Below are positions 9,760 through 64,000 of a stretch of 64,000 nt of DNA, piece after piece. Below the pieces are notes generated by a model. The model saw only the letters and a list, made by a program, of their open reading frames with translations. It did not search any database and had not been told where the DNA came from. A program made the position numbers and the translations under genes. The stretch is from Pavona decussata (Eukaryota): assembly GCA_977016875.1 (NCBI GenBank), contig CDRNST010000056.1:6324001-6388000 (forward strand), read 5' to 3'. How positions within the stretch are numbered: position 1 is the first letter of the stretch; every line of letters starts with the position of its first letter.

Positions 9760-10799
9760 CTTTAATCTCGTTTCCAGAGTCCTTCCTTCCCAACTGCTGT
9801 TCTAGGGTAACGCAGACTCTGGTAAAGAGATTGCCGCAATCTTGTCTTCCATCTAAGGGTACTGAAATGCGCGTCTCTATCTCATTCTGCTTGCACTTGC
9901 TCTTGCGTTTGCGTTGCTCATGTAAACCAGGCTTTAAAGCTTAACAACGATGACGGAAAAGGGACCAGATGCGAGCCTTGGAAACCAAATTAATTAACAA
10001 CGTTCTGTGACCATTCTAGTTCCAAGCAAAAAAAATCTTTTAGAATTTCTCGTTTGGAATGCATTTTTTTTACGTAAACTTGTCATGACTCTGCCGTTCA
10101 ACGTCTTTCTAAAGTGTCAGTTTAATTTCTCATGTCAACCTTGCTCAAATGCCCTTTTGCCACTGACAAATCAAGTGAACATATTAAACACATTTAAAGC
10201 GCCAAAAACCCAGAACCATATTCCCTTCATATGACGAGACGGAGACTAGTCACTTTCCTTTGTTGGCAGCCTCGAACTTTTTTTCCCGGTAACTAAAAAA
10301 TCCAAGAGAGAGCTACAAACGCAACGCTTCCAGGCCGTGACACCTGCAGGAAGCTGAAGCGACATGAACATCAGGCTGATGTATATCTTGTGTAAAAGTG
10401 TCAATACGAATGTTGCGTCACCAAACATAACAAAGTTTCAAAATTAATGGTACAGCTTTTTCAATTCAATATTTCAATTATCAATTCAATGACCTTTCTT
10501 ACAATCAGCATTTATGATTACAAGTGACGTTTTATTGGAGGGATATTTGAGGTTGTTAAAATAAAATAAAAAACATATAATAATCATAAAAACGTGAAAG
10601 TCGCGTTGGTTAGAATTCACTTTCCAACATGTTAAAACAGTGACAAACCACGTTAATTTACTATTGGTGAAATATAGCTTTATTTCCCTTTTCCCTTTCT
10701 CTCAACATGGTGACAATAGAAAGTGAACAAACTAACCAATCCCATAAAATATTACAACAAACTTCACATTATGATCACGACCGTTCTCAATTAGCTATC

Positions 10800-13480: not shown

Positions 13481-16400
13481 CCTTTACAACAGACGTGTAA
13501 GAGCTACTCTGAACACACACAAAAAGAACGATTGGTTTTACACTGGTTCATTAACAATCTGATTGGTCGTTGCTAGGTGATAATCAAATAAGGTCAATTA
13601 ATGTCTGTCACTAAAATGTTCATTGTCCCTTTATGTCTAGACTTATTACAAACAACTGTCACCCACGGACACGAAATCATTAAGTTTCCGACACCATGCC
13701 AGTGGCTACAAACCAAATATTTTTAGTGCTCTTTTAATAAGGTTTTATGTTTGCCTTGGCTTTTTAGAAAACTTTGTAACTGCACACTAAGCATTCCAGT
13801 TTTGCCATTATTTTTGTTTGCTCTTTTTTAACAGGGAGAAATGTGTGAATTAGTTTTGGTGAAAAGAAAAAAAACTACGTGTAAAATTTTCAAAGTGAGA
13901 AGCCGTATAAAAGTGGATTTAGTCGTCACATTATTGTCAAAATGTGTAAACACATTGAGTCTGCTGAGTGGGTGGCGGGGGGGGGGGGGGGGAAAGTGGG
14001 GCACAATGACCAAATTGTTAAGCCCATCAGGCTTCTTGTTGGGAAATTCTAAGTGCAGTGTATTCTGAGAAAGGAGTCATGCACAAGTTGTACTTGTGGA
14101 TAAGCTGTACCCAAATTTTGAACGGTTATCTTGCAAAATTCAAACTGAAGTTTTAAACATGGTTGTAGAAACTTAAGCAGTTCTTTAAACTACTTATTTA
14201 TTTTATTTATTTATTTATTTATTTATTCATCACAACATACAATCATAGAAAGTCACAGTGAATAATAAACTAGGATCTTACATAAGTTTAGAGTGAATTA
14301 TAATAGTAAAGACAACGGCAGCAACAGCAGCAGCGTCAACAAAACCAGCTGACACTGGAGCGGCATCACAAAGGATACCATCTTCGTCACCAGAAACAAC
14401 ACTGCCACTACCACCACTACCATTTCCTTTTCAGTTACCTGACGTACCTTCTTCCACCGTCACACCCACGACCATTCAGACCCTTTTCCAGCAAAAATCT
14501 TTTACCAACCAAGTTTTACTTAACATTTTAAAAAACCAGACACAAGTCATTAATAGTATTAACCAAATTAACACATTTTTAACCATGGGCTCAGAAAACA
14601 CCCACGGCGCCCTAAGATAATCGGTAATATTTTATATAATTAATCCTTATTTTGGGAGTTAAGTGGACTTTGCTGAACATTAAAGGATACAACAATTGTT
14701 TTGTTATGATCAAAAGAAAGTGTACTATTGTACATGTAAACATGTCCTGAAGTAACATGTTGTAAATTACTAAACAAAAGGTGGTGTATCATTAATGTAA
14801 TTACAGTTGTATGCAAGTGTTACCTTGCTGGTCTGCTGTACAAACTGAAACATATGAAGTGGGACCTACCTGGACAAACAGGCTTGTCTTGTGACTGCAC
14901 TTTGTACTTGTTCTCATCTGCACGGCATGTAAGATGTACAAGATCTTCAGTCTCAGATCTTTTTCTTTTTACAGATTAGCGCCTGTCAATTTCAACTAAA
15001 TCAGCACTGCACTCCTTATCTAAAGCTTGAGAAAAACTCCATGTGTTTTCACTAAACAGAGTAACAAAGTCCAGTGTCTTTCTTGGGGTATCATTAATAA
15101 CAAACTCTTTATTATTTTCCAGACGTTTCAAACTTTTTTCCGTAACTGTGACACCACCTTAAATAGTGTCTCTTTCAGAGATAAATTTCTTGCCAATTAA
15201 GTCCTCACTCAACACAACACAATGCTGCCTGACAGTAATGCCACCCAAGGACAATGGATTAGAGCCTCATGGCTCATTTCCCTGCTTAATTTCACAAGGA
15301 GCATATTTCCCTTCCTCTGCCTGACTTGTGGTAGGTGCAATTTAATAACAGGAGGGTGAGGTGACATCATCAACTGATATGCTTGTATCAAGTAAATTTT
15401 CCAGCTGGGATTCTGTTAAAGACCAGTTCATCTGTTTAGCAGTCCTTCCAGGTGTAATATTTGGCAGTGCCTTTTCACGTTCAGTCTCTTCACTATTCTC
15501 ACTAGATGGAACAACATTAATGACCGGAGAGTTCTCAACAAGAGATAGCCTTTCATGAAGAATTGAGCATGACTCATCACTGTTTGTTTACAATTGTGAA
15601 GAATACCTTGATGATGTACGGTGCTCTTCGGGAACTAGTCCTTTTAAAGACTGGGTCATTACCATGCTCACTTAAGATGAAGAAACATAATCAACACTTA
15701 CCATGGCAATGACACTTTTCTCTGGTGGTGGAGTGAATTTCGAATTACCATAATAACTCCCCTTTTCCTTGATCACATGTTCTAGAAAATGTGATGGAAC
15801 TAAACCTTTGAATACTTCACCCCGACTTAATGACTGGTATAATTTTTGATGGTTGACCACCATCATTTGACATTTTTAATCTCTTCTGGTTCACGTATCA
15901 GTATTCACTTTTACAACAGGCCCGATAGAGCTACTCTGAACACACACAAACAGACTGCTTGGTTTTACACTGTTTCATTAACAATCTGATTGGTCATTGG
16001 AACAGTACCGCCTGAATCCATATGCACATTGGCACGCGTGAACCGCAAGGGCAGAACGCGTGAAGGCCCGCGCGGTTCACGAGACGAAACCTAGGTTGAA
16101 TATTTCCACTTCCAATTTCAATTTCAGCCAAATCCTCTTCAGTTGGATAACTAACACAAGCTAAGCTTGTTTCTCACTTGACTCAGTTGCTCCAATGGAA
16201 CCAGTCACTACTTTCTCTACAGTGTTGTGATGATATGCAGCTGATCTAGATCTCATTCTAGGAGAATTTAAACAGTGCTCTTTTAGCAGAACGAGGCTGC
16301 GGCACCAACCAAAATGGCCTGATATAGTTTTCAAAAGCCAGTGTCAACTTTTAACCCTTTCGAGTGTTAACCATTGTTGAGAACTTAGCCCTGTCCACTA

Positions 16401-16586
16401 GGGTTTCTTCCTGAACTTATAACTAAGACAATCAGTAGAGTCCATTGTACCACTCCTTTTTAATCTCTTCTGGTTCACGTATCAGTATTCACTTTTACAA
16501 CAGGCCCGATAGTGCTACTCTGAACACACACAAACAGACTGCTTGCTTTTACACTGTTTCATTAACAATCTGATTGGTCATTGCAA

Positions 16587-18091
16587 CAGTACCGCCTGAA
16601 TCCATATGCACATTGGCACGCGTGAACCGCAAGGGCAGAACGCGTGAAGGCCCGCGCGGTTCACGAGACGAAACCTAGGTTGAACATTTCCGGCGGTCAA
16701 AAGGACGAGGCCCAAACACAATAGCATCTTATTGCCTATTGTGAGTTTATTGTTTTGCGTTGAATAGATTTTTTTCTCAAGTAAGCCGCATGAAACATGA
16801 AACGCCGGCTTGAAATGCAGCTGGTCTTTGTAATCGTCGCGTAGGAGACTAATCTTGGACTGCTTTAGGTGCATGGATTTTCACCATCGCGTAATTCAAC
16901 GTACACAAGCCATCCATGCATTTTCTCTAGCCGTTTAAATTCAAGCGGAATTTCCTTAAACAGATCCGGGAAACAGATCGAGCGCGCGATTTGCTTTCCT
17001 ACGATGAATGTTACGTGACCCGCGCGAAATGCGTTACCCGTAATATAATTTAATGGTGACTTCCTCAAGTTCTTCTCGAAATGTTTCAAGTTATATCAAA
17101 ATTTAAAGGAATTCATTACCTTTAAATAAAGAAATATTCTTCCTTTCTTTCAAAAAAAAAATTATCAATGGTTTATTATTTACGTTAATGCGATGCGCTT
17201 TATGTCAGTTTCGAAAAGTAAGCGTCATCTTGTCGGCTTTTGCACGGTGCAAGCGATGTTGTAATTTGCTTCTAATCCATGCTTATGTGTATTTACTTAT
17301 CTTAGCGGCCGAAAAAAATATTTCTGTGTGTACTTTTCTAGTATGAAGAGACTGACGTTTTTACTCGGAAATTCCGACACATGAAAATCGAAAATATGCA
17401 AATCATTCCCATTGAACCTTTTCAATTGCGGCAGGCCGTGCCGTCACAGCTGTTCGTTTGTAGTTTTGCTGACGATAAAGGAAATTATTACGCTTGAATA
17501 CTGCACAAACGCTATTTGACGCTCGGCAAACAAAAAAAAGTTTCATTCGTGGAAAACAAACGAAAACATTACGTATGCAAATTGCGAACGAAATTAATCG
17601 AAGCGTGACAACACTGACAACGCTTCATTCGCCATTTTCGATCAATTCCTTTCAAAAATTTCGAGTTCTGCTGGGATACTTTGATAGCAGATTTACTGAG
17701 CAATAAATAATAAGTTATACGTGAAAAAGTCGAATTTTAACTTCAAAGTCCTTCGTATTGACGTACGCTTTGATCTCAAGTGACAGTAGCTCAAGCCGTG
17801 AGCGATGCATCGATGAGATCGCGAGAGGTGGATGTGGTTTCCATGAAAATCTCTTGGGTAAATGCGACCTGATAACTAACAATGAAACACAAACAAAGAG
17901 CAAACAAAGGCAATTAGGAGCACGAAGACACGGCCATTGAAGAACGCGTGATTCCTTAGGTTTCGTCTCGGTTTCGTCTCGTGCTTCGTTCCTTCCTCTC
18001 GAGGTGGACGCAAGGGCAAAACGCGTGTACTGCCCTTGCGTCCACCTCGTGAAACCCGCGGCTGATGTACATATGGATTCAGGCGGTACTG
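16587..18091. mobile_element. Non-autonomous Tc1/mariner-pogo type element (1.5 kb)
   Basis: TIR CAGTACCGCCTGAATCCATATG / CATATGGATTCAGGCGGTACTG; inserted at the TA that is empty in copies 1 (13574) and 3 (20855); right TA intact, left reads AA. Confidence 0.92.
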
Positions 18092-48309: not shown

Positions 48310-48805
48310 TATTTGAGAGAGAGAAGCACCTGGAAACGGTCATCAGGAGGATTCTTCCCAAAGAAATTGCAGATTCTGTCTGCAAGAAAGACTCCAGGCT
48401 AGCCCATCTTTATGGCCTCCCCAAGACCCATAAAGACAGCTTGTGATGCGGCCCGTCTTGTCTGCAACAGACACATACAACTATGCTCTGGCAAAGTGGC
48501 TGGACGAGAAGTTAAACCATTATCAAGCAATGATAACATGATATCCAACATCTTTCAATTCTCAGAAAAGATCCAACATCTACAAATCGGTGAGAATGAT
48601 TTCCTGGTGTCATATGACATCACAGCCCTATTTACTAACGTACCTTTAGAAGAAACTATTCAGATTTTAGCAAAGAAAAAATTCAATGGGAACTGGTTTA
48701 ACACACACAACTTTAACATCTATGAGGGCGACCTAATCGAGCTGCTTACAATCGCAACCAAAGATCAGCTTTTCCAATTTAACAGTGATTTGTACAAGCA
48801 ATTTG
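48310..48805 (+). pseudogene. Penelope-like element reverse transcriptase fragment
   Basis: LYGLPKTHK...RP.LS....Y.Y.LAKWL, LVSYDITALFTNVP..ETI, FQFN...YKQ. Confidence 0.88.
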
Positions 48806-49470
48806 TACTAGACACCGTCCCCCTAAATATTTCTCGAGGAATAAGCTACCAGCACACTTTCCGGAGGAGTTTGTCCTTGTAAAGGGAAAGTGCTCTGTAG
48901 ACAGTAGAAGGAGAAACGTACCAAGGAAAAGTGTCTTCAGAGAATGAAATTTTTGCGTCATCCTTTGGATCACCAACCTAGGGAAGTCAAGGGTAAGCTG
49001 TCATAATATTATGTTCTAAAATGTACCGATGCTGATATTGCAGGTAAAAATTACTTCAGGAAAAGGAAATGTTTGCTTGCAAATAGGATTTGTATGCCTC
49101 TTCTTCCAAGTGAGTATTTTTTCAGTTCCCTGGGGGTCTGGGACTTGGGGTGGCAGGTATTCACATTTTAGCCGATACCCTTTAGGTATCGTATGCTGGC
49201 CATGTGACCAGGCATCCACGTGAGTGTTACTTCAGTTCATCTTGACGGTGGTTAAAGACATGCTTTTTCATTCGAGGTGAGTTTCATCATTTTTTACCCC
49301 CTTTAGTAGTTTCTCCTGGCTCATTTGTTTTTGCAAGCTAAAAGCTTTTCATCTTCGTTCGATTTGTCTTTTTTTTGGATATCGGTTGGGTTGGATTGTA
49401 GTTTGGTTCCACGTGTGCATAGTCGATTTCACAATTTTTCTTAGGTTCTTTCTCTGGCTTGGTCTCTTCC

Positions 49471-50191
49471 ATGGTTAGCTCACCTCCTGCAGTTCTTATA
49501 TTGGGCCATTCATTTGTTCGAAGTCTAAGTTCAGACCTCTCATCCAATTTCGATGCTCATGCTTCTGAGCATTTTGATCTCGTGGGTGACATCGTGATTC
49601 ACTTGCACGGCGTTAGTGGTCGTACTGTGGAGAAACTTCGCCTTTATGACATAGTAGGGTACGTAGTTCCCGGTGTTGTGGTCTGGTCTTTGTGCGTATA
49701 TTATCATGGTTGGGTGGGAAAATGCTCGGAGATATTAGCTGCATTAAGCTACTCTACAATCCGAGGGTAAATAAAGATTGATGATGATGATGATGATGAC
49801 CTTGGTGTTGTTTCGGCTCTTCGACCTGATATTATTATTCTTGAAATAGGCACTAATGATCTTGTTGATGATCGATGAGGTTGTTGGTTCCGAGATTGAT
49901 GATTTGGTCCAATTGCTCTTCGCATCTTATTCAGTACGTGTCATCGGTGTTTGCGAGGTGATACCTCGTGTTCGCGCGTCGTTCCTTAACGTGGCAGCAC
50001 CGATCCTTAATCAGTATCTAAACGGTATTCTAGAGCTTCGCCCCAATGTTTTTTCCTGGCGTCACAGGGGTTTTAGTAATCCAACTGTCAGTCCTTATTT
50101 GTGCGATGGTGTTTACTTGAACTCTCGCGGTCAGTATTCCCTTTATCGCAGCTATCAGGGAGCCATCTTGAAGGCCCTTCACTTGCTTTGA
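49471..50191 (+). pseudogene. SGNH/GDSL hydrolase (copy A), interrupted by a LINE tail
   Basis: VLILGHSFV, HGVSG, PDIIILEIGTNDL, DGV(Y)LN blocks. Confidence 0.88.
49651..49800 (+). mobile_element. 150-bp LINE 3' fragment with (GAT)n tail
   Basis: AATAAA followed by (GAT)n; ATGAC duplicated; host frame LYD|LGVV rejoins and matches KYDLGVL of copy B. Confidence 0.85.
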
Positions 50192-50307
50192 TCTTCTTTA
50201 TACCTAGGAATTTGAGCTCTCGTGCCTGGAGTTCATTTATTTGTGAGCACCTTAAGGCTCTGGTTATATTTATTCCCTGCGCTCGTGTTGTTCATTCGTG
50301 TTTTATG

Positions 50308-51027
50308 GAGCCCTTGTTGCTCTTGATTGTTTATGTTTTGTTTTAGAGCCCTTGTTACTCAAAGTTGGTTTATGTTGAAGTCCTTGTTGCTCTAAACTGT
50401 TTTATATTAGAGCCCTTGTTGCTCTCAATTTATTTTATATTAGAGCCCTTGTTGATCTCAATTTATTTTATATTAAATTTATTTTATATTAGAGCCCTTG
50501 CTGCTTTCAATTCATTTTATATTAGAGCCCTTGTTGCTCTCAATTTATTTTATATTAGAGCCCTTGTTGCTCTCAATTTATTTTATATTAAATTTATTTT
50601 ATATTAGAGCCCTTATTGCTTTCAATTTATTTTATATTAGAGCCCTTGTTGCTCTCAATTTATTTTATATTAAATTTATTTTATATTAGAGCCCTTGTTG
50701 CTTTCAATTTATTTTATATCAGAGCCCTTGCTGCTCTCAATTTATTTTATATTAAATTTATTTTATATTAGAGCCCTTGTTGCTCTCAATTTATTTTATA
50801 ATAGAGCCCTTATTGCTCTTGTTTAATTTTATTTTATGTTGAGCCCTTGTGGTTCATGTTTCTTTAAATTAGAGCCCTTGTTGCTCTTCGCTGTTTTATA
50901 CTAGAGCCCTTGTTGCTCGCAATTTTATTTTGTTTCATTTCATTTTAGAGCACTTGTTGCTCTCAAGTTATTTTATATTGAGCCCTTGTTGCTCGTGTTT
51001 ATTTGAAATGAGGGCCCTTGTTGCTCT
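50308..51027 (+). repeat. Array of ~20 stem-loop units AGAGC-CCTTGTT-GCTCT with T-rich linkers (33/49-bp period)
   Basis: Direct inspection; AGAGC and GCTCT are complementary. Confidence 0.92.
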
Positions 51028-51215
51028 CAATTTTGTTTTGTTTATTTTATTTTTTGCTCTCAGGTTATTTTGCTTAACATTATTTGCCTTGACAGGCGCC
51101 TGCGGTGACATTTTGTCAGCCATGCCTGTGAAGTTGCTTAGTATATTCAGTGCCTGTAATTTTCCTTAGCAGTGTTGATTCTCGGTTTTCATTTTGTTTC
51201 CTTTTTTATCTGTAG

Positions 51216-52411
51216 ATTCCCCTTCGCTGTTCTCAAAGATCCAAGCGCCCGTCGTCTCAGGCCTTGAAGGCATTAGTAACCTCCCCTCTGCGGCGGGCCA
51301 GAAGGCAGAATCCAGTTGTGGATGGCCACTTGCCATAATCGTCATCTGAACAACAGGCTTCCCTGATGCCGTAGGTTTTGGTATCGGCCTCTTCCGCCAC
51401 ACCTGCTTCAACCCTGGTGGATACTGCCACTACTATTCTCTCTTCACCAGTGTTGGATCAACTTGTATCCCGGGTGAAGGAGGAAGTTACAAGGAAGTTC
51501 CAGCCATTGCTTGACAATTTGGGCTCCTTGTCCCAGCCAGCGCAGACTCCCCACTATGTACCAGCTCCGTACTCCTCTGGGTCCACCTTTCAGCCCACTC
51601 AGGGCCCAGCTTCACAGATCCAGGATGCAGTGGAGGTGCCAGCTGTGCATGACAGGGTCCAATCAGTTTTAGTCTCCCTGTCAGGTGAGCAGCATTTGCT
51701 CCCTGGGACCCAGCGTCCCAATGATGTATTTATGTCTGTCAATTTGCCAATTGGTGCAAAATTCTTCAAAGTGAATTTGTTGATTTTGGCTCTCCTTTGT
51801 TAACCCGGCTTTTGAAGACAAATTTCAAATTACACTCCAACCCTCACGGGAAGGCACCTCCCCATCTCTAGCTCTTGAGCCAGTTAACAAGGCAAAGTAC
51901 TTCAATAGATGTTTGGCTACAGGCTTTTCATGTCTTTGTAGGTATTTTTACAGCACAGTATCCCCATGAGGCCCCAGGCCTCATGAAGTATGGGGCTACT
52001 ATTCATGATCTGGCTGCTAGAGGGCAAAATTGGCGTTTTTACGATGAAAATTTTCGTTTTTTGCACCAGTCTCAGGACACATCTCTCCCATGAGGGACGA
52101 TACATTGGGAATTGTGGCTGAGATCTCAGGGTACTGTTAAGAAATTTCATTCCACCATCTGCGCTGTTAAGTCCCTTGATGTCCCTCGAGTTTATTATTT
52201 CAAGTATCACAAAGGGGGCCATTGCTCAGGATGCTCTTTTAAACACTCATGTTCTAAATGTGATGGCCCCCAAAGGGCCATAAATTGTAATTTTCGTGCC
52301 TATGGAAAAAAAGGTGCTTCAAACTTTCTCAATCAACGAAACAATAAACCCTCCAGCAGCCAGAACCCACTCCAGCCTACCTCCACAAGGGCTGGCTTCC
52401 AACGCCCGTAA
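51216..52411 (+). pseudogene. gag-like ORF1 of copy A
   Basis: Starts (ATG>ATT)PLRCSQRSKRPS directly after acceptor TGTAG; homologous to MPPRRSQRQKRPS of copy B. Confidence 0.8.
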
Positions 52412-53689
52412 ACTGATCCTTTGCAATTTTTTTCTTTCTGGGTATATCCCTTCAGTAGTCCAGCTTTTATCCCATGGCTTCAGGTATGGTTTTTCTTTGC
52501 ATTATGAAGGGCCCCGAGACTCTTCATGCGCTTATCGGTTTGTATTATACTTATGGCGTTTTCAGTGCCCTCACCTTCCCTGGGCGAAACTTTGTATCAA
52601 GGATTTGATTGAGAAATATTTTAAAATAAATGCAGCTATGGGATTTTACCCATAGCCATTTACTCCAGTCATTGAATGTGGTATTTTTGCCCAGTAAACA
52701 TAGCTCAGGCAAGGCAGCATTTTGGGGTTGTGCTAATTATTTGTAAGGGAGAAAAGCCATAAAAAATATTTCAACCTAATTAATTTGTTTTGAAATTTCC
52801 TTTGTCTGGTATTCATTCATCGTAAATGAGAGACAGAATTTAGGGGATGGTTTTAAAACGGGCAGCCATCTTGACCGGAAGTTAAATTATGCGTCACTGG
52901 AAGTAGTCATATTTTTGTTTAAAAGCTTTCATAATACAACATAGTTTCAGAAATTGGTCATTTATTATATTTATAGGCTTTGTTTTTTAAATAATAAAGC
53001 TAGCATTTATACAACTGACGAATTTTAAAGTTTTGTGTTACTCTGTACTAGACCAGAAGATCTTTTCACTCTCACACAAAGTCATTAATGAAATGCAATT
53101 TTAACTCATCACTGCAAAGGTACGACTTTCAGAAAAGCAAACTGAAATGATCATAAACCCAAGAGAGCGGTATGTTGTGTCTCACTATCGGTTATTTTAG
53201 AAAGTAAACATGATTAATTGTTGGGCTCTCTTGTCACTACACAGAAAACCGTTCCGTGGAAATATTTCTTGTTAAAACAAAATGTGTGTTGTAGTTACCT
53301 ACGCTGATCTTCTCAATTTAAAATTTAAAAAAATACCCGATAGCAGAGATACTGTCGAGCTTGCTATATTTCTACCTAAAAAGAGTCATGGTGGCCTGGT
53401 GGGTTCTATTACCCAGAATGCCAATGTCAGTATCATCCTCGCTCCCCCATGTTTGTGTGCTTGTTGGAAAAAGACAATAACGTGATGAAAGAAGTGACGA
53501 AAAACGTGATGATTCTCACTACATGAACTGTAAGTATCGTGAAATGTTTTTTTCTTTTCAATATATAAATAGACACTTGCAAAGACATTGCTGTTAATTG
53601 TTTTAATGTAATGTGTAGTTTACCTTTCTCCTTTTCAAAAAGTGTCTAGGGCAACACCTTTTATTATGTACTTAAATATTAAATACCTA

Positions 53690-56600
53690 AAGATTCTACA
53701 CCAGTTCCAAAGCATCGACACCATGAACAAAGACCAGCTAGGCAAACCGCCTTCGCTAGCGATGTCTTGAACGTAGTCGCATCATTTGAAGAGCATGGGA
53801 ATACTTTTACTGCAGAGAGTAAAGATCTAATAGCAGTTCACACAAAGGATGTCGTAGACGAGACCGATGTTACCACTGTGCAGAATGTTGTCAAGATCGG
53901 GGAGGTCCCATTTAAACATGTTCGTCAAGGAACGATTTATCGACCGGAGCAAGCTGGTAACAGACACCATTAAAAAAAACAAATTGCCAACATTCAATGC
54001 CTCAAGCTAGAAAGTTATCACCAAGGAGAAGGAAAGGATCGGGCTTCTGAAAGAGGATTGTGCCCTTTTCTCTAGACTTTACATCGCATGTCAGAGTTGA
54101 GATGGAAATCTTGAAAGTTTTTTCAATTTGCAAATCATGGCCACCATCCCTTTCTCAAATGGGAAATCTTAGAGAAGGACAGAAGGCAGATCTTGTTAAG
54201 TGTCTTAAAACCATTATAACCCCAGAAGCAGATCAGCCAACACTAGATACAATCATACTGAATGGAGCCATAATCGTTCAGATGCTGCCTCCCGGGACGG
54301 TGCGTACCTTTGAAGAGTACTGTATTTACCCGTGTATAATGCGCACTTATTTTCCCTGAAATTAGCGTCTAAAATTGAGATGCGTATCGTACACGGAATC
54401 CTTTGTTTAGGCCCACACGCGATTTAGCATAACAAAGACACTGAAAGATGCGATATAAGTGGTCTTTAATTTAACAGTAAAACAAACTACCAATAGAAAC
54501 TTAACAACTCTGATCTGTGAATAAATTAAAACCAGTACTTAAATGCAACAGCTGATCAACAAAACAATCCTGGGGATTGGGGAGAAGAAGCCTACTTGTT
54601 TTGGACGCCTTCGAAGCTCACGTGACTGACAGCGTGAAACAGCGATTGCGAGAGAGAATACCAACTTAGCAGTAATTCCCGGCGGATTAACCTCTATTCT
54701 GCAGCCGTTGGAAGTTTCTTTAAGCAAGCCGTTTAAAGATAATGTGAGAAGGAGGTGGATGGCCGAAGGAATCCACGAATTTACCACTGGTGTCCGCCAA
54801 AAGAAGCCATCTGAAGAACTTATTCTCTCGTGGATTGCTGGAGCATGGAGTGAAATTCCAGAAGAAATGATCAAGGCATCATTTCTGAAATGTGGAATCA
54901 CAATCTTGATGGAACAGAAGACCACTTGTTTCATGAGGCCGAGGACAACGACGAACTCAACGACTCATTTGTAAGAGACCTTTTTCAGTCAGACTCTGAG
55001 TCAGAGTTTGAAGGATTTGACATTTGAGCATGAACCGATGAGCCCCGCTGAGTTGAACAGTGATTTTTGAAACTGAGTAGATTTGATTCGCGTAAGAAAA
55101 TTAAGACAGTTAGCATCACGACAGAAACCTTAGTTCAAGGCATTGATTATTATTGTTGTAGCTAAGTAATTTCGTATTTTTTCACAGTAGCTTTTGTGAA
55201 TAGAATTGTAATTAGGCTGTCGTAATTACTGATAGCGGCATTGCTAAACATTATTGTAAACTCCGGTTACTGGTACTTCGCACGTTCATAGAATAAATTC
55301 ATATCCATACGATTTAACCTTCGTTTTGAGTTGTCTTATTTTTATTTTCTGCCAAAGCATGGTCCAAAATTGGGGTGCGTATTATACACGGGTAAATACG
55401 GTACTGCCAGACAGTTTCCAGTCCTCATATTGCAAGACAGCTCCAGTCTGCAAAGCAAGTAGATCTGGTATGGGATGTGTATGGAGAAGGCTCCCCGAAG
55501 AAAGCAGCCCGCGAAAGAAGCGGCACAGGTCAACAGCCAAAAGTCACGTCATCAACGCGAATCCTCTCAGACTGGAAAGGATTCCTTTGTGTTGACTAGA
55601 ATAAGAATGAGCTTTTCCTACTGCTAGCAAACTACGTAGTGTCTATGGAGATACCCGATGACAAGGAGCTGTGTAGCACTTCTGGAGAGAGTGTTTTGTA
55701 ATCCACCAACCGAACGGATTTGACCATGCTGTCACCATGTACCAACGAAGAGGCAGACAAGCAACTGTTGCTACACATCTTGGATGCCAGCCTCCTCGGT
55801 CATCGAAGAGTGGTGATCAGGACCAACGATACAGACGTGGTTGTTCTAGCTGTATCCGTTGTTAGCACCATCCCTGTGGGTTACATACGTTTCAGGAAAC
55901 AACTGAAAAACCTTGCTGCCCATACCATTGCTGCAACATTAGGGCGAGAGAGAGCTTTTGTTCTACCCATGTTCCACGCACTTACTGGATGAGATACAAT
56001 TTCTTTCTTTGCAGGTAGAGGCAAGAAGACAGCATGGGACGTGTGGGGTGTATTTCCCGAGCTTACATCTACACTACTATCCCTGACCTTGTTACCTGAA
56101 GTCATCAGTGACGCTTGCATGGTCGTGATCGAGCGTTTTGTTGTCCTCCTCTATGACCGCACAAGTAACCTAACAGAGGTTAACGAAGCCAGACAAGAGC
56201 TGTTCTCAAAGAAGTCCAGCCCCCAACCAAAGCAGCACTTCTGCAGCACACCAAGCATTCTGTATATCAAGGTGGGTTTGTTTGGGCCCAAGCACTTCTT
56301 AAGCAGCCACTACTTCCAAGCCCTTCTAAATGGGGATGGCAGTACAACGACAATTTTCGGACACCAATGTGGACAACTGTGCCGCATATGAAGGACACAT
56401 GCTGCGAACTGATCCATTGCCGCAGCAAGACTGCGTGTACAGGTCGATGCAAGTGTGTGAAGGCAAGCTAGGCTTGCACAGGCTTGTGCAACTGTGGTGG
56501 CAACTGTAACTACAAAACGTGAATTGTAGCTTCTGAGCAGCATCATCTCTTGTACTTCAAAATAGCATGTGATAATGACAGGCGCTACTTCGAAATATTT

Positions 56601-57337
56601 TTTAAAAAAACTCTTCAGGTTGAATGTGTTGAATGTAGTACTCAGTGAATCTAAAGAGCAGTGGAATTTGAATAAAGGACACATTACAAATTTTTATTTG
56701 TCATTTTCCACGCCTTACGTATGCCAATTTACGCTGAGTTCAGCCAGTTGTTATAATTTTAAGTTCTTTTTTAAGTCGCATATTAAAGAAGAATTCAGTA
56801 GAACGATCCTGAGCAGTCACGTGATTAGTCACGTGACTGGGCACGTGATCTCAAACTGTTATAGATGGCAAAGCAAACACGGTCCAATGTCAAAAGGTTG
56901 CTTATACATGAAAACAGCATCAAAATTTCGAACATTTGCCTCAGCCTCGTTTTCATGCAGCTATGATTTGGAACATGCGCTGTTATAATTTTAAGTTCTT
57001 TTTTAGGTCACATATTAAAGAAGAATTCAGTAGAACGATCCTGAGCAGTCACGTGATTAGTCACGTGATTGGGCCCGTGATCTCAAACTGTTATAGATGG
57101 CAAAGCAAACACGGTCCAACATCAAAAGGCTGCTTATACATGGAAACAGCATCAAAATTTCGAACATTTGCCTCAGCCTCGTTTTCATGCAGCTATGATT
57201 TGGAACATGCGCTGTACGCAGCTCCAGTGCCTAATTTGAGCTGGCTTAAAATATTTACCTTAGGGAGGAAAGTAACCTCACAAAGTTTCATGCTTTTATC
57301 AAAAAACGAACAATTTTGCTCGTTAGCAGCTGGACTA
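53690..57337 (+). mobile_element. Academ DNA transposon, 3' half with right terminus
   Basis: CALFSRLYIACQ, WPPSLS, IILNG..VQ, EEAD..LLLH, RTNDTDVVVL, FHALTG.DT.S.F.GRGKKTAW (XPG/PIN-like), Cys-rich tail to ~56520; ends ...GCAGCTGGACTA; 232-bp tandem duplication 56749-57212. Confidence 0.85.
54320..55401 (+). mobile_element. pogo/Tigger-type element, internally deleted, with DDE_1 fragment
   Basis: TIR CTGTATTTACCCGTGTATAATGCGCAC / GTGCGTATTATACACGGGTAAATACGG, TA TSD; LLVLDAF.AH, VIPGGLTS.LQPL.VS..KPFK; host frame EEY|CQTV rejoins. Confidence 0.93.
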
Positions 57338-60300
57338 TAAGCTTAAACGAGTAGAAAAACGACATGCACTTGAAAATGAACAGCCAGTTGATGGAAAGTA
57401 CACACGCTCAGTTTCCCCTGCATCTCTTGACAATACTGGAGCTTGCTTTTATCTGATGGGTATTGTAAGCTTAATAACCCTTTACACAATGTATCAATGC
57501 TTGGCTAGGATGCTCATGTGAGGAAGTGTGCAGCCATACTTCAGGATCAAACACTCTTGGCAAAACTAAGTACAGGCGACTTTGTAGCACTGGAGGCAAA
57601 GTATCATGCCGTTTGCCTAACATCATTGTATAAAAAGGCGGAGGCAGTCAGAGAAAAAGACGAAGAAGATGAAGTGAATCCAAGACGGCCTGAAGGTATC
57701 ACACTTGCGGAACTGGTCTCATTCATTGAAGTGTCGCGCATGGTCAGTAGTACAGAGCTCCCAGTTTTCAAACTGTCCGAATTTGCTAAAAAAGTACACA
57801 TCCCATTTGGACCAACTTGGTGAACACAAGGACACGCGCTTTCACACTACACAGCTAAAAGATCGCATTCTTTCACATATTCCAGCTCTTGAAGCATACA
57901 AGCAAGGGCATGATGTCTTTCTGGCTTTCAAAAATGATCTTGCCAATGTGCTGCAAAAAGCTCACAAGGAGGACTGTGATGAAGAAGCTATGCATCTAGC
58001 AAAGGCCGCAAGTATTGTTCGCAAAGACATGCTGTCAAAGAAGTATACATTTCACGGATCATTTAAACCGAACTGCCCGGTGAACTCTGTTCCAGCTTGT
58101 TTGGTATTTCTCATCAACATGATGCTATCCGTCCGAACATTGAAATGCAAATGAGCACTTTATCTAGTGCTAAATTCGGTCTTACCCTCTCACATTTGCT
58201 ACAGTACAACAGCTATCATCGCCGCCACAATTGAGAAGTGAAGCAGGAGTGAAGAAACAAGTCTCATGAAACCCCATTACCCATTTATGTAGGGTTATCT
58301 ATTCATGCCAACACCCGTAGTCATTACCTTGTAGAAGCCATGCACACTTTAAGACTTAAAGTGTCTCGTATGACAGAGTTCTTGCCATTTCTACTAATCT
58401 GGGTAATGCTGTTTGTCGTCGCTACCAGGAAGAAAACGTTGTGTCCATCTAATCTTCATTTGGGTTTGTTCACAACGGCTGCTGTCGATAACATTGACCA
58501 CAACCCTAGTTCCACAACTGCGAAAGATTCATTTCATGGAACAGGGATCTCTTTGTTTCAGCACACCACTACTGACATACCTGGCAATTCTCAAGAAGGC
58601 GTAACCATGTCGCAAACCGCAGCTAACACAAAATCTGTGGTCGAGTTACCCGTGTCGTATACTCAAGTTGCACCAGCTGCTCTTCCTAACAAAACCCATC
58701 CAATCCCAGAAACGACTGGTCGACTACAAGAAGACGAAAGCACTGTTAATCACGCCATGGAAAAGGAAATGATCTGACTCGAAGATGTGAGTGACACCAT
58801 TACCAATCAAACAAGTCTGGAGGAAAAGAAAAACGTTTCATGGCCAGCACATCACTCCACTACAGACCGGCAACAAAATACCAGTCCCAGTCTGTCTGTC
58901 ATATCTGCACTTTTGCCTCTTTTCCCGGACCAAGCTAAATCTGTGGCAATGATCTGGCATGCAATGGATGTCATCAAAGCGTCTGTAAACTACCTGAACC
59001 CTGGCCAGGTCCCTGTTATTGCTACGGATCAGCCACTCTTTGCTGTTGCCAAGCAGATACAGTGGACCTGGCCAGACAGTTACAGAGAGCCGAAGTTTGT
59101 CATCATGTTTGGTGGCCTGCACATTGAAATAACCTTTTTAAGTCATTGGTGAGTGGCTGGAGTTAAGTGGAGGACAGCCGCACAGGTGGACGCTAATGTT
59201 GCCTCGGCTGGGACAGCAGAGTCATTCGTGAAAGCCACAAGCGTTACTTGTTCACGCCGAGCACACCACATAACGGTGTCCTGTCTTTATGCGCTGCTCA
59301 AGAAGGCATATGTCAAGTATACAGAGGGCCTAAATGATGGAGATGACACCCTTCTCTTTGATGACTGGTGTAACTAGCAGGTATCAGCGTCACCCCAGTT
59401 CCAGTTCTGGTATACAACCTTGCAGCTTGAGCTTTTGCTGTTGGTCTACCTTACCTACCTTTACATTGATGCCCTCTCCAAGATGTTACCTTGGTTTTTT
59501 GCACTGAACCACACCAACTATGCGCGTTGGCTACCAGTTCATCTTTGTGAAATGTGAGCACTTAAGCAGACAGCCCCAGATGTCTTCTCAAATCTTGTAA
59601 AGGAGTTGTTTACAGTTCACGAGTCCCCGAGAAAGTTCTCAGCTATTGCTATTGACCAGGTGCATGAACAGAACAATGGCATGGTCAAAGGATAAGATAG
59701 TGCAGTTGGTCTGACAGAGAACCACGGAGCTCTTCGTCGATGCATGATTACAGGGCCTGAAATGGCAAGTGGTGAACGAATTTGGTGTGCTTAAAAAGGT
59801 GGCAGCTCTGGGAGAAGATCATCATGAGGTACAAGGAATTTTTTAGGTGTCATTCTTCAAAGATGTCAAATCCCTTGCAGCAGCGATGGAAGATCTAGGT
59901 AAACCCTTCCTGGAAGAAAGTGAAGATCTGATAGTTCTGGACACCAAGCAAATTGCTGGACCACCGGCAGTTACATGTGTGCGTCAGATGGAGGCCCTTG
60001 GTAGGGAACAGTGTAATACCTTCATAACTGAGCATCTCGTGAATCAAAAGAAGTCATTATATGACCCGATAAAGCGAAACAAACTCACTTTGTTCAATTC
60101 ACCTCCACCAAAGGCACAATCTAAGGCAGCACAGCAACTTCCATCCATGAAGAGCGACTGCTCACTTTTTGCCAGGCTGTACATATCCTGCCAAACCAGG
60201 GACAGTGACCTTAATGAATTTTCAAGCATGGGAACCAGGGAAGTCCGCCATCCTTATCACATGGTGATAAATTGCGCCTTTCCAAAAAAGAAGTCTGAGC

Positions 60301-60350
60301 TGTCAGAGTGGCTGCAGGCTAACAATACACCACAAACGGAAGTTCCTATG
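57338..60350 (+). pseudogene. Second Academ transposase (central part), truncated on both sides
   Basis: GDFVALEAKYH..CL, ETPLPIYVG, AAVDNIDHNPSSTTAKDSFHGTGISLFQH, DQPLFA.AKQIQW, MFGGLHIE, WFFALNHTNYARW, DQ.HEQNN, CSLFARLYISCQ. Confidence 0.87.
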
Positions 60351-60973
60351 ACGATACCCCAAGCCCTCCAAAGTGGTTTATGAAACTATACAAATGTAGC
60401 TCAGTTATTTCAGAACATGGCTCCAGATGACGGTACAGAGGAAACATTGGTTGGGGATTCAACCTCAGACCAAAACTCTGATTGGGGTACTCAAGACAAA
60501 CAGGACTGTGCCCTGTTTGCCGAGTCACAACACTTAATTGGCAGCACTTTGCACGATGCTGATGCGATAGAAGTTCAAAGATCAAATGAAACAAACACAA
60601 GTCCCACATTTTAGTCCCTGAGTTGAATTCAATGATTCACAAGGCGAAGGTGATCAAGCAGCTTGCCCAAAACAAAGAGGTGTCTACTGATCGCCTCATT
60701 CGCATCCAACAAGCCCAAGAGCCACAAGAAAGCGAGTCTGACGATGGGGTTGATGTCGATGGTCACAGTAATATTGGACTATGGGACTATGTTGCGTTTG
60801 AAAGTGAGCGGCGATATGATGATGAAAGACCCTACCGCTTTGCCCAAGTACTTCGAATGCGCTGTCACACATCAACAAGGAGCAGAACAGAATGTGGCGA
60901 GCCAGTCAACCTCCAGCATGACAGTGTAAAGAACATACCACTTTTGGTCAAGCCCTACAAAACTGCTCTATGA
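60350..60973 (+). pseudogene. Unidentified coding relic (acidic; VSTDRL.RI motif), possibly a transposase C-terminus
   Basis: ORFs 60417-60614 and 60623-60973; abrupt junction with the Academ relic. Confidence 0.3.
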
Positions 60974-61529
60974 TCAAGTGTTTGCAAGATCCAGTGAAAC
61001 AGGACTGGGGAATGCCACAGAACTAAGTAATATGTTTTGTAGCCAATTGGATTTTGAGTGTTGTAATTTTATATTTCTCACATGCAATTTTCATGAATCA
61101 CTAGCTATTAGATTTAAACAGATAAAATATTTGCCCGCAGATAGAATTTTTATGCCTTTTCCCGCTTTTGTTAGTAATCAATTGGATCGAGTGGTCCTGG
61201 GTCTTGGGGAAGAAGTAATTGGAATAAGGTATAGCCCCGTTTAGATGCTTGTTTCAGTCATATGATCAATATGATCATACCATAGTCATTCGTCTCGGTT
61301 CAGCAGCGGATTAAGACGTGCTTTTGTTCTTTCAAGGTAAGCCTATATAATCCACCGGTTCCCGGTTTTTCCGCTCTATTTCACTCTATTGTGTTCTGAA
61401 TTTTCTTTGTTGGGGTTACGTTCCCCTTCATTGCAATTAGTTACCAATTTTTTCCCCATTTGTTTCGTTTTGCCTTGCTTTATTTCCGGACCGCGTGGCG
61501 CTACGTTAAGCAATTTTTCTGTTGGCGAG

Positions 61530-62123
61530 ATGGAAACTACACTTTCTCCAAAAGTTCTTGTTTTAGGTCATTCTTTCGTACGTCGATTAGCTCATGATCT
61601 TAAGAACGATTTCGATCCGCAAGCCTCTGAGACTTTTAACCTACAGGGGCAAGTCCACGTGCGTTTACATGGCACCGGCGGACGCACGGTCCAGAAATTG
61701 ATCAAATACGACCTGGGTGTCCTTACTGAGTTTGCCCCAAACATTGTTATTCTAGAAATTGGAACCAATGATTTAACTGTCAGTGCACCCGAGGTCGTAA
61801 GTTCCGCTATTGATGATTTTGTTCATTTCCTTCGCTGTTCCTTTGCAGTGAAAATCATTGGCGTCTGTGAGGTCCTCCCTCGTGGAACAACATATTCACA
61901 TGGGTCGGATTTCAACAAGGCGGTGCCGATTTTAAACAATTACCTGCGAGTTGTTTTAGGCGAACAAGAAAGCGTTTTCTGTTGACGCCATGTCGGCTTT
62001 TGCAAACCCAGTTTTGATCCATATTTGCCTGATGGCGTTCACGTGAATTCCGTGGGCCAGTACTGGCTGTATCGCAGCTATCAAGGCGCCATTATCAAGG
62101 CTTTAACAATGCTTGCTAAGTAA
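61530..62123 (+). pseudogene. SGNH/GDSL hydrolase (copy B), intact except for one TGG>TGA stop at 61983
   Basis: VLVLGHSFV, HGTGG, IVILEIGTNDL, LPDGVHVN. Confidence 0.92.
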
Positions 62124-62346
62124 ATTTAGGGCGTTTACGTTTGTCTTTTCCCCTTTGGTACTTCCCCACTCACCCCTTTATTGCTTTTCTTCATTGGTAG
62201 CTAGCGGTTTTTGCCTCATGTTTTATTTAACACTTTATTATACGCATCATGTTTATTTGGGGACCTGTGTTCCCGGTTTCTTTTTTACGGACTTGCTGTT
62301 GCGGCGACCTTTGGTCAGCCATGCTTGTCCATGTTTACATTTGTTT

Positions 62347-63200
62347 AGAGCCCCTGTTGCTCTGTTTTCTTTTAAGTCATTGAGGCCTCGTGTCTCATTT
62401 TTAGAGCCCCTGTTGCTCTGTTTTTATTTTGATTCATTGAGGCCTTATGTCTCATTTTTTACAATGATTAAAGCCCCTGTTGCTCTGTTTTTCTTATGAT
62501 TAATTGAGGCATTGTGTCTCATTTTTTACAATGACTAGAGCCCCTGTTGCTCTGTTTTTATTATGATTCATTGAGGCCTTGTGTCTCATTTGTTACAATG
62601 ATTAGAGCCCCTGTTGCTCTGTTTTTATTTTGATTCATTGAGGCCTTGTGTCTCATTTTTTGCAATGATGAGAGCCCATGTTGCTCTGTTTTTATTTTGA
62701 TTTATTGAGGCCTTGTGTCTCATTTTTTTTATAGTGATTAGAGCCCCTGTTGCTCTGTTTTTGTTATGATTCATTGAGGCCTCATGTCTGATTTTTTTAA
62801 CATGTTTAGAGCCCCTGTTGCTCTGTTTTTATTTCGATTTATTGAGGCCTTGTGTCTCATTTTTCACACTGTTTAGAGCCCCTGTTGCTCTGTTTTTGTT
62901 TGTTTATTTGAGGCATGGTGTCCCATGTCTACCTTTGTTTAGAGCCCCTGTTGCTCTGTTTATCATTTGATTCATCGAGGCCTTGTGTCAAATTTTAACA
63001 TTGCGGCCTTGTGTCGTTTTACATTGTTTAGAGCCCTGTTGCTCTGTTTATCATTTGATTCATCGAGGCCTTGTGTCAAATTTTAACATTGCAGCCTTAT
63101 GTCGTTTTACATTGTTTAGAGCCCTGTTGCTCTGTTTGTATTTGCTTACTTGAGATCTCGTGTATCTTATTTTTTCTTTGTATTGAGCACCTGCTGCTCT
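62347..63200 (+). repeat. Array of ~26-28 stem-loops, ~67-bp dimeric unit: AGAGC-CCCTGTT-GCTCT alternating with GAGGC-CTTGT-GTCTC
   Basis: Direct inspection. Confidence 0.92.
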
Positions 63201-63303
63201 AATTTATTCTCCCCCCCCCCCCCCCCCCTTTTTCCTAGTCGATTATCAAATACCCCTTAGGCCTCTGGGTCTCTTTGCCTTTGTTGTGGTTTTTCTTTCA
63301 CAG

Positions 63304-63762
63304 ATGCCTCCTCGTCGTTCACAACGCCAAAAACGTCCAAGCGAAAAGGCCCTACAGTCCCTTGTCTCCGTGCCAAGCCGTCACCGTCACCATCAGCAAC
63401 CAGAAGGTGACCCTGGTCAAGTGCACGAAGACGGAGTGGGTAGTGAACATAGTGGTGATGCATTGCCTGCGATCAGTGGCAGTGTTTCTCTGCCTGCCTC
63501 ATCCGCAGCTCTCCCTCCTGGTGTACTGAAGCACATCATAGCAACGGTTACGGCTGAAGTCACCAAGAAGCTCGGCGAGACACAGGAGCCCACCACAGAG
63601 GCCCCCGTGGCATCATCTCATGAGGGGGCGGCTGGGCAGGTAGAAACGTCCTTGCAGGGTGCGATTGCCTCTTTTCAATCCTCCCTGGCAGGTGAGGCCC
63701 TGTCTTCCTCCACTTCCACTCAACCCAAGGACATCTTCAGTTCCATTAGCATACCTGCCGAC
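63304..63762 (+). pseudogene. gag-like ORF1 N-terminus of copy B
   Basis: ATG directly after acceptor TTTCACAG; VT.EVT.KL and LAGE...P.DIF.S..IP match copy A. Confidence 0.8.
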
Positions 63763-64000
63763 GCTATTAGATTTAAACAGAATTATGTATTGTTTCTTAC
63801 AGATCGCATAAAACTAAAATTAAAGATTATACGATTCCGTGTCCAGTCATCTATTCAAGAACATTCGATTTCTTTGCTGACCCGTTGGACTACGGGATGA
63901 ATGGTTGATGGTTCCTGTGTACTTTGGCCTGGTGTGGAAATTTGATGCGTAGCCCGATAATGGGAAAAGACGAATTAAAAGGAGCAAAGAAAACCCGGAG

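Follow-up and report, generated by a model that had tools for sequence, protein, structure and literature searches.

We analysed a 64,000-nucleotide (nt) stretch of the Pavona decussata genome (GenBank assembly GCA_977016875.1, contig CDRNST010000056.1, positions 6,324,001 to 6,388,000 of the forward strand), here called the window, which carries two diverged copies of a retrotransposon, element 1 and element 2, each with an SGNH hydrolase gene and a hairpin array ahead of gag. Taken together with their relatives, these copies make it likely that, in a Ngaro-type cnidarian lineage, splicing of a 5' intron bearing the SGNH gene and the hairpins selects between an RNA that serves as genome and esterase message and an mRNA for gag and pol. 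Splicing, in short, probably determines whether an RNA yields the esterase or Gag.

The features of the two copies are given below with reference to L001, a 1.15-Mb contig that carries the closest relative (93% identity) among 99 homologues, of about 190-200 amino acids (aa), of the SGNH open reading frame (ORF). A slash marks a predicted splice boundary.

Element 1:
49066-49276, plus strand: A1-type leader and predicted exon 1, homologous to the starts of element 2 and of L001 A1 (AAATGTTTGCTTGCAAATAGG...); 3' end TTCGAG.
49277-51215, plus strand: predicted GT-AG intron of 1,939 nt; donor GAG/GTGAGT, pyrimidine tract and AG at 51214-15.
49471-50191, plus strand: SGNH/GDSL esterase ORF, disrupted; tblastn with the element 2 and L001 SGNH sequences gives 37-69% aa identity in three pieces.
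50336-51030, plus strand: tandem array of 33-nt units with the hairpin AGAGC-CCTTGTT-GCTCT in each (TRF, hairpin listing, covariation).
51101-51136, plus strand: conserved bulged hairpin TGCGGTGAC...GTCAGCCATGC (RNAalifold; motif in at least 13 lineages).
51216-52411, plus strand: gag-like region with in-frame stops and frameshifts (tblastn, L001 gag residues 1-274).
52547-52763, plus strand: B-type terminal repeat and 3' end (blastn to L001 B1/B2, 16004-16183 and 16496-16664, 71-73% identity).

Element 2:
61123-61336, plus strand: A1 terminal repeat and predicted exon 1, 94% identical to L001 A2.
61337-63303, plus strand: predicted GT-AG intron of 1,967 nt; donor AAG/GTAAGC, acceptor TTTCTTTCACAG/ATG; L001 has the same layout.
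61530-62123, plus strand: SGNH/GDSL esterase ORF (Pfam Lipase_GDSL_2, E=3.6e-7), 93% identical in aa to the ORF of L001, which is intact.
62300-62335, plus strand: conserved bulged hairpin TGCGGCGAC...GTCAGCCATGCTTGTCC (RNAalifold; conserved motif).
62340-63180, plus strand: hairpin array (TRF, hairpin count, covariation).
63304-63762, plus strand: first 153 codons of gag, then cut off; 82% identical in aa to residues 1-161 of L001 gag.

Both elements follow a common order, in which a 5' repeat is succeeded by a strong GT donor, the SGNH ORF, the hairpin array, a pyrimidine tract with AG, and gag. When the coordinates and shared layout reported by a first-pass annotation of the window were read again, all were correct, and so was its statement that the two copies are strongly diverged: nucleotide identity is 64-77%, counted over alignable parts only, the SGNH genes share 37-69% of residues in pieces, and the gag genes 30% starting at codon 1. 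The proposed donor is in each case the top-scoring GT among the 400 nt preceding the SGNH ATG (p=0.01 against shuffles for GTGAGT of element 1, p<0.01 for GTAAGC of element 2).

Element 1 is an internally deleted copy, because its gag passes straight to the B-type repeat and RT (reverse transcriptase) and YR (tyrosine recombinase) are absent by both tblastn and Pfam. Its SGNH gene is disrupted by frameshifts and by an inserted segment of some 150 nt (~49648-49797), a putative LINE tail in the first-pass annotation, which ends in (GAT)7 and has no other copy within the window; the motifs GHSFV, GTNDL and DGVxxN are retained. ATT at 51216 replaces the gag start and aligns to gag codon 1 of element 2, a C-terminal Cys/His knuckle of gag is found at ~52180-52300, the B-repeat match to L001 spans 52547-52720, and the element terminates in ...GCCATAAAA, resembling the L001 terminus ...GGCATAAA. 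Element 2 is 89% identical in nucleotide sequence to L001 9693-12355, and this homology ends at 63764. Its SGNH ORF is interrupted by one in-frame TGA (61983-61985), and its acceptor AG (63302-03) is directly followed by the gag ATG at 63304.

Since the window itself lacks RT and YR (a Pfam scan of all open stretches between 52.7 and 61.1 kb gave no RT and no YR, and a DDE_1 transposase fragment only), the family was identified through relatives and not from the window alone. Downstream of the SGNH gene, L001 carries gag, an RT ORF (RVT_1, 2e-8) and then a YR ORF, the latter with only a weak Phage_integrase match (0.0077); the related locus L007 gives Phage_integrase at 2.5e-7, the same domain is recorded in L006 and L008, and L006 has RVT_1 at 1e-9. 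The split direct repeats of L001 lie in the order A1...B1-A2-B2, with A1 9689-9900 and A2 16230-16441 97% identical, and B1 16015-16234 and B2 16496-16715 99% identical. A1/A2 pairs were found in L004, L005, L006 and L007 as well; in the window, A1 is present in both copies and a single B in element 1 only. No methyltransferase family, the domain that separates DIRS1 and PAT from Ngaro, turned up when the RT and YR ORFs of L001, L004, L005, L006 and L007 were scanned against Pfam. By the structural definition used in the literature (PMC9210276, PMC4157794), applied to the domains and repeats of full-length relatives, the window elements are Ngaro-type. The Ngaro/DIRS-like label of the first-pass annotation is thereby upheld by a full-length relative that has split direct repeats as well as RVT_1 and a tyrosine recombinase ORF. 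Gag relatives with a named source belong to Nematostella, in which Ngaro elements have been reported as abundant (PMC4157794), and to Porites, and one of the sample series is a Cyphastrea coral metagenome, in keeping with a cnidarian host.

Several further features were seen around the 3' repeats of these relatives. A C-rich motif, CC(A/G)CC(C)TCCTCCC, stands directly 3' of A2 at five loci of four lineages (L001 16443, L004 13824, L005 14068, and 13827 in both L006 and L007); on the opposite strand it is a purine tract, and it might serve as a signal for priming or strand transfer. Between YR and B1 of L001 (15560-15900) the sequence (T)AGCAAGGGCGGCTG is repeated about six times, and one copy occurs in the L002 intron (~1020). 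The contig L075 begins and finishes within YR, and in L028 (7347-7648) the leader, donor and SGNH start reappear after YR; such circularly permuted or head-to-tail contigs are consistent with tandem copies or a circular form.

We fetched 93 loci and determined the position of SGNH relative to gag. In 42 of them, on coral or anemone-type contigs, SGNH precedes gag in the same orientation, so that the two genes, whose lack of linkage had been named beforehand as a refuting result, are linked in 42 of the 45 informative loci. Upstream sequence was too short in 46 loci, as contigs usually break within the array.

Among the contigs that depart from this arrangement, L069 has 2.4 kb upstream of gag (1-2420) without SGNH, yet retains an acceptor-like CCCAG/aATG, and about 1.1 kb past YR (7009-7189) it shows a donor-like AAGTTAAGTATAA and an SGNH start. 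This distal SGNH is either the start of a second element or an SGNH in 3' position, the contig ending too early to decide. In addition, the deposited Porites evermanni gene model P0206 fuses the C-terminal half of the esterase to gag; annotation pipelines appear to mis-join parts of these elements.

The predicted splice sites recur in the relatives. In most lineages the top-scoring GT upstream of the SGNH ATG is a strong donor (p<=0.07 against shuffles at most loci), with the forms TTCAAG/GTAAGC, TTCGAG/GTGAGT, ATCAG/GTGAGA, AGAG/GTGAGT, ACAG/GTGAGT and GTG/GTAAGT. The distance from donor to SGNH ATG ranges from 13 to 226 nt, and a donor AAAG/GTAAGC sits merely 13 nt ahead of the ATG. At the other end, a pyrimidine tract and AG lie 0-15 nt ahead of the gag ATG in nearly every lineage, most commonly as CAG/ATG. 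When an acceptor was scored as an AG within 15 nt of the ATG, preceded by a 15-mer of at least 70% pyrimidine, 21 of 30 distinct gag-ATG contexts passed, versus 8.1% of 1,070 control ATGs, and most of the contexts that failed still had an AG at 0-1 nt. Gene calls that run through the acceptor end in ...FQ/MPPRR, which is the translated pyrimidine tract plus CAG. Both positions are kept among lineages with only 30-50% protein identity.

The donor also stands in a fixed relation to the terminal repeat. In the four lineages checked, 1-11 nt separate the end of A1 from the donor (A1 end/donor at 9900/9907 in L001, with 6 nt between, 7972/7974 in L004, 7944/7956 in L005 and 7933/7940 in L006), so that the A1 boundary nearly coincides with that of exon 1 in every full-length lineage checked. 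As A1 ends before the 5' splice site, A2 carries no donor.

A perfect TATATAA (61344-61350) lies 8 nt into the predicted intron of element 2 and is present in L001 too. This box and a TATA-like one in L061 (223-231) were dropped as evidence, not being conserved across lineages.

Exact excision of the predicted intron was observed in one pair of contigs, L061 and L063, which come from metagenome collections and belong to a family more distant than those of the window. L061 has a leader, the donor AAACAA/GTTAAGTA with its GT at 399, SGNH from 470, a hairpin array and an acceptor TTAACAG reaching 1835; one T follows, and then the gag ATG at 1837. L063 1-122 corresponds to L061 277-398 and L063 123-971 to L061 1836-2684, with no mismatch over the 122 and 849 nt, so that exactly L061 399-1835 (GTTAAG...AACAG, 1,437 nt), with SGNH and hairpins, is missing from L063. 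This gap starts with GT and ends with AG, and its break points cannot be shifted by a single base. Sequence similarity at the junction amounts to 4 nt, too little for a k-mer mis-join, which argues against mis-assembly of L063. Both splice sites are also retained in L085, a diverged member of the L061/L063 family. As read from these contigs, the L061/L063 intron was removed from an RNA at some time, whether L063 itself is RNA or DNA.

The distribution of start codons follows the same boundaries. The interval from donor to SGNH ATG is free of ATG in 13 of 17 loci, both window elements included, the 122-nt leader of L063 has none, and from the stop of SGNH to the ATG of gag there are 7-27 ATGs. 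With such a leader and such a distribution, the esterase AUG would come first in unspliced RNA and the gag AUG first in spliced RNA, which is consistent with production of the hydrolase from the former and of Gag from the latter. Thus the intron that the first-pass annotation had proposed is backed by donor and acceptor sites that recur across lineages and by a precise GT...AG removal in one contig pair, and the coding layout (13 of 17 loci; 7-27 ATGs) fits the splicing switch that it had postulated.

The conserved hairpins of both types, those of the array and the bulged one, fall within the interval from donor to acceptor. Every array unit of the window and of its nearer relatives has a stem of 5 bp and a loop of 7 nt, with the variants AGAGC-CCYTGTT-GCTCT, UGAGC-...-GCUCA, UGAGG-...-CCUCA, UGAGG-CCUUGUG-UCUCA (with a G.U pair) and CGAGG-CUACGUU-CCUCG, and a conserved loop consensus C-Y-N-Y-G-U-K. 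In element 2, TRF reports 67-nt units repeated 8.9 times at 62401-62996 and 88-nt units at 62935-63144; each 67-nt unit holds AGAGC-CCCTGTT-GCTCT plus UGAGG-CCUUGUG-UCUCA, the latter with one G.U pair. Covariation was assessed on 72 distinct windows chosen on the loop motif alone, with 500 shuffles and slid controls. Paired cells made up 77.8%, versus 61.9 ± 1.7% in shuffles (none of the 500 reached the observed value) and 33.6-55.3% in slid controls, and the covariation score was 0.409, versus 0.182 and 0.09-0.14, respectively. The outer stem pair alternates between UA, AU and CG, and the inner pair between CG, GC and GU.

The G.U pairs, which form on the plus strand alone, point to the sense strand, as does the number of hairpins: element 2 has 57 five-bp hairpins on the plus strand, 23 on the minus strand and 19 in shuffles, and an excess of about 2.5 to 3-fold is found in L001, element 2 and L002. 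Folding of the whole array gave no strand signal, both strands lying far below shuffles (z=-8.0 and -8.9). Array copy number varies among close relatives, and so does unit length (33, 67, 88 and 107 nt). Distant lineages carry other hairpins in the same place, namely CUGUCA-UGCUUUUUG-UGACAG in L005, UGCGUAU-UUCACU-AUACGCA in L006 and GGUAC-UGUG-GUACC in L061, which suggests coevolution of the element with a partner. The bulged hairpin, TGCGGCRAC-loop-GTY(N)GCCATGCTTGTCC, is present in at least 13 lineages; RNAalifold gives it 6 pairs, 2 of them with compensatory changes, and the array is found on either side of it, depending on the lineage. An Rfam search of 49000-64000 (E<=1) returned no match, to either hairpin type or otherwise.

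The SGNH gene is maintained, given that its catalytic blocks are nearly invariant. Across 47 sequences with a mean column identity of 43%, blocks I (GHS), II (G), III (GxND) and V (DxxH) show little or no variation, and G13, H14, S15, G48/50/51, G78, N80, D168 and H171 are invariant or at least 90% conserved. SGNH motifs are discernible in both window ORFs, and the catalytic tetrad is intact in relatives. The L001 protein matches Pfam Lipase_GDSL_2 at 1.2e-9; the catalytic subunits of PAF acetylhydrolase Ib (PAF-AH Ib) are the best match by profile (2e-9) as well as by fold, and the esterase of a long interspersed nuclear element (LINE) ORF1 protein, 4c1b, matches at 2e-5. The esterase ORF, about 197 aa long, stands alone and has about 20% identity to solved structures. 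Its AF2 model has a pLDDT of 94.1 and the flavodoxin-like alpha/beta/alpha SGNH fold, and Foldseek relates this model to PAF-AH Ib structures with E ~1e-8 and TM 0.71-0.75 (about 0.74 to 3dt6 and 1wab), and to many GDSL esterases. The product is therefore predicted to be a small PAF-AH-Ib-like acyl esterase. The esterase of the LINE ORF1 protein of ZfL2-1 (PDB 4c1b) binds lipids (PMC3905857); by analogy with such CR1/L2 enzymes, the element's product might act on lipids or membranes during the element cycle, a suggestion in which we place low confidence.

Taking these observations into consideration, we propose the following cycle. A full element would consist of A1, a GT-AG intron with the SGNH gene, the bulged hairpin and the hairpin array, then gag, RT with RNase H (RH), YR, B1, A2 and B2, and its transcription would begin within A1. 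In the unspliced RNA the esterase AUG would be the first after the donor, and gag would remain behind the SGNH ORF, the hairpins and 7-27 AUGs, so that the esterase is made; this RNA would also be the template copied into new genomic copies, because genomic copies retain the intron. Splicing would join the short leader to the gag AUG, now the first AUG, and so create the mRNA for Gag, RT and YR. The intron hairpins would tag the unspliced RNA as genome, acting in packaging or in RT recruitment through a coevolving element protein, e.g., Gag, and may in this sense be a mark of unspliced RNA like retroviral psi. That the families of the window splice, and which protein each RNA makes, we infer. 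Whether the scheme extends to a whole animal YR lineage is doubtful, although possible: such a lineage would use splicing to part genome from mRNA, reversing the retroviral arrangement, with an unspliced genome RNA whose sole product is an accessory esterase and whose recognition relies on intron hairpins coevolving with Gag, and with gag and pol expressed only after intron removal. In it, Gag bound to the array could also act back on splicing and thereby adjust how much of each RNA is made.

Several observations weigh against this model. Both window copies are dead or defective, and none of the 93 fetched loci provides a spliced junction for either of their families. The sole junction belongs to the L061/L063 family, which is only about 35-45% identical in protein to those of the window, and L063 (IMG 3300008016, contig Ga0099818_1206024) could be a rare intronless DNA copy instead of an mRNA; no poly(A) was seen at contig ends of the Ga00998xx series. 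When all 93 loci were compared with one another by megablast, no further pair of the L061/L063 kind, with and without the intron, emerged, and an exact-protein look-up of the L063 gag returned the same contig only. Logan contigs traced through gag proteins in search of spliced transcripts (L002, L003, L010, L011 and L093) either kept the intron or broke inside the array in 5 of 5 cases, a sixth having no usable upstream sequence. Three loci with more than 1.5 kb upstream of gag have no SGNH there, the hairpin excess is not clear in L055, L064 and L057, and the covariation counts overstate the number of independent events because array units are duplicates.

Could the segment be no working intron at all, with reinitiation or internal entry yielding Gag from the full-length RNA, with incidental GT and AG signals, and with L063 a one-off deletion or an assembly error? 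The missing junction for the window families among the fetched loci would then be expected, as would the retention of the segment in all other inspected contigs and the weak score of the L061 donor GTTAAG, obtained with a vertebrate-style matrix. However, the L063 gap runs from GT to AG, is unshiftable, falls at the predicted sites and has perfect flanks, and its 4 nt of junction similarity do not suffice for a k-mer mis-join; moreover, donor and acceptor positions are kept at about 30-50% protein identity, and in unspliced RNA a complete ORF and 7-27 AUGs precede gag. We therefore regard this explanation as improbable. Still less credible is that SGNH and array are a nested separate element or a captured host gene, present in the two copies by chance. 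The described vertebrate Ngaro elements have SGNH at the opposite end, after YR (PMC9210276), and three loci lack it upstream of gag, yet order and strand are identical at 42 loci that represent many lineages and samples, both components lie inside the A1...B2 boundaries of L001, no terminal repeats of their own were seen, and the catalytic residues are conserved over element lineages. This leaves chance nesting a very slim prospect.

For the array, we consider it rather unlikely that it is a fast-evolving minisatellite without RNA function or a tandem promoter or enhancer acting at the DNA level, with the hairpins a by-product. The monomers of mouse L1 are a tandem promoter/enhancer of this kind. 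Variation of copy number and unit length among close relatives, the placement of the array on either side of the bulged hairpin and the strong folding of both its strands would all suit a minisatellite; compensatory pair changes beneath a conserved loop, G.U pairs that work on the plus strand alone, the roughly 2.5 to 3-fold excess of plus-strand hairpins (L001, element 2, L002) and the independent rise, in several lineages, of unrelated hairpin arrays at one and the same position would not. A conceivable, although less favoured, reading keeps the intron as real and makes the array a nuclear-export element, like the retroviral constitutive transport element (CTE), or a splicing brake, in either case read by a host factor. 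Intron-retaining RNA must indeed exit the nucleus for esterase translation and for copying, and the repeated, structured motifs with their conserved loop, like all the structural data, are compatible with such roles. On the other hand, loops and stems differ widely in L005, L006 and L061, which a coevolving, element-encoded partner fits better than a fixed host factor. The packaging mark that we favour and an export or brake function are not mutually exclusive.

Described Ngaro elements, such as zebrafish DrNgaro and Xenopus DIRS-53_XT and DIRS-54_XT, possess an extra SGNH ORF of unknown role (PMC9210276, PMC7192593). The elements studied here resemble them in their gag, RT/RH and YR ORFs, in the A1...B1-A2-B2 repeats, in the lack of a methyltransferase and in the extra SGNH hydrolase ORF itself. 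They differ in its position, which is after YR in the described elements (PMC9210276) and here between A1 and gag, inside a spliceosomal-type intron; in L001 and 41 other loci SGNH is upstream of gag and not, as in the vertebrate SGNH-bearing Ngaro, after YR. They differ also in having a hairpin array, a conserved bulged hairpin and a gag AUG at the exon junction. As the first-pass annotation had supposed, the layout has no account in the searchable literature, where we found no description of Ngaro RNA splicing, of a 5' intron, of hairpin arrays or of an SGNH gene borne by an intron (a scope that excludes Repbase and two key reviews).

Pools of spliced and unspliced RNA are known from Drosophila copia, from barley BARE1, whose spliced RNA serves for Gag, from Ogre and CRR, with an intron between ORFs, and from retroviral env mRNAs (PMC3735527). 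In all of these, as proposed here, a spliced mRNA stands beside an unspliced RNA that is copied, and genomic copies keep the intron; however, their unspliced RNA is the gag or gag-pol mRNA, while here gag and pol expression appears to depend on splicing. Copia, BARE1, Ogre and CRR are, in addition, long terminal repeat elements, whereas this is a YR element whose intron holds a whole accessory gene. The hairpins invite a comparison with retroviral psi in lying just inside the first intron, and would thus be confined to unspliced RNA. They differ from psi, which retroviruses carry 3' of the major 5' splice site, in forming a tandem array of 10-20 small and nearly identical hairpins accompanied by a single bulged one, and the likeness is one of analogy, not of membership. 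The esterase shares the SGNH fold and the Ser, Gly, Asn and His blocks with PAF-AH Ib and with the ORF1 protein of CR1/L2 LINEs, the latter also retroelement-borne, but in these LINEs the esterase is fused to the RNA-binding ORF1 protein and here it stands alone.

Little is known of gene expression in tyrosine-recombinase retrotransposons, or of how they choose the RNA to be copied. If the model is true, gag and pol would need splicing and copying would need its avoidance, a solution to the conflict between translation and replication unlike those of retroviruses, copia and BARE. The layout is testable, with an accessory gene and RNA structures in one 5' intron, a gag AUG at the junction and repeats that end short of the donor, and the small hairpin with its conserved loop is a candidate for a protein-RNA recognition pair. 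In practical terms, these elements can be misread in the repeat libraries and genome annotation of anthozoans, as in the Porites model that merges esterase and gag pieces.

The flanks of element 2 carry a perfect direct repeat:
61104-61122, strand not assigned: 19-bp direct repeat GCTATTAGATTTAAACAGA, left flank, exact 19/19.
63763-63781, strand not assigned: 19-bp direct repeat GCTATTAGATTTAAACAGA, right flank, exact 19/19.
Element 2 thus keeps its 5' end and is cut at the 3' side in the middle of gag, yet is bounded by these repeats. A target duplication is not expected from YR integration, and LINE-type insertion truncates the end opposite to that lost in element 2.

Other sequences of the window lie outside the two elements. 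Just upstream of element 1, an ORF of 156 aa (48412-48882) has a weak RVT_1 match (E=0.039) and is probably a leftover of another retroelement. Between the elements, the DDE_1 fragment at 54630-54971 is of the pogo/Tigger type (Pfam E=1e-12), and at 56749-57215 a 232-nt unit is repeated twice in tandem, with repeated GTCACGTGA(C/T) motifs that have CACGTG cores.

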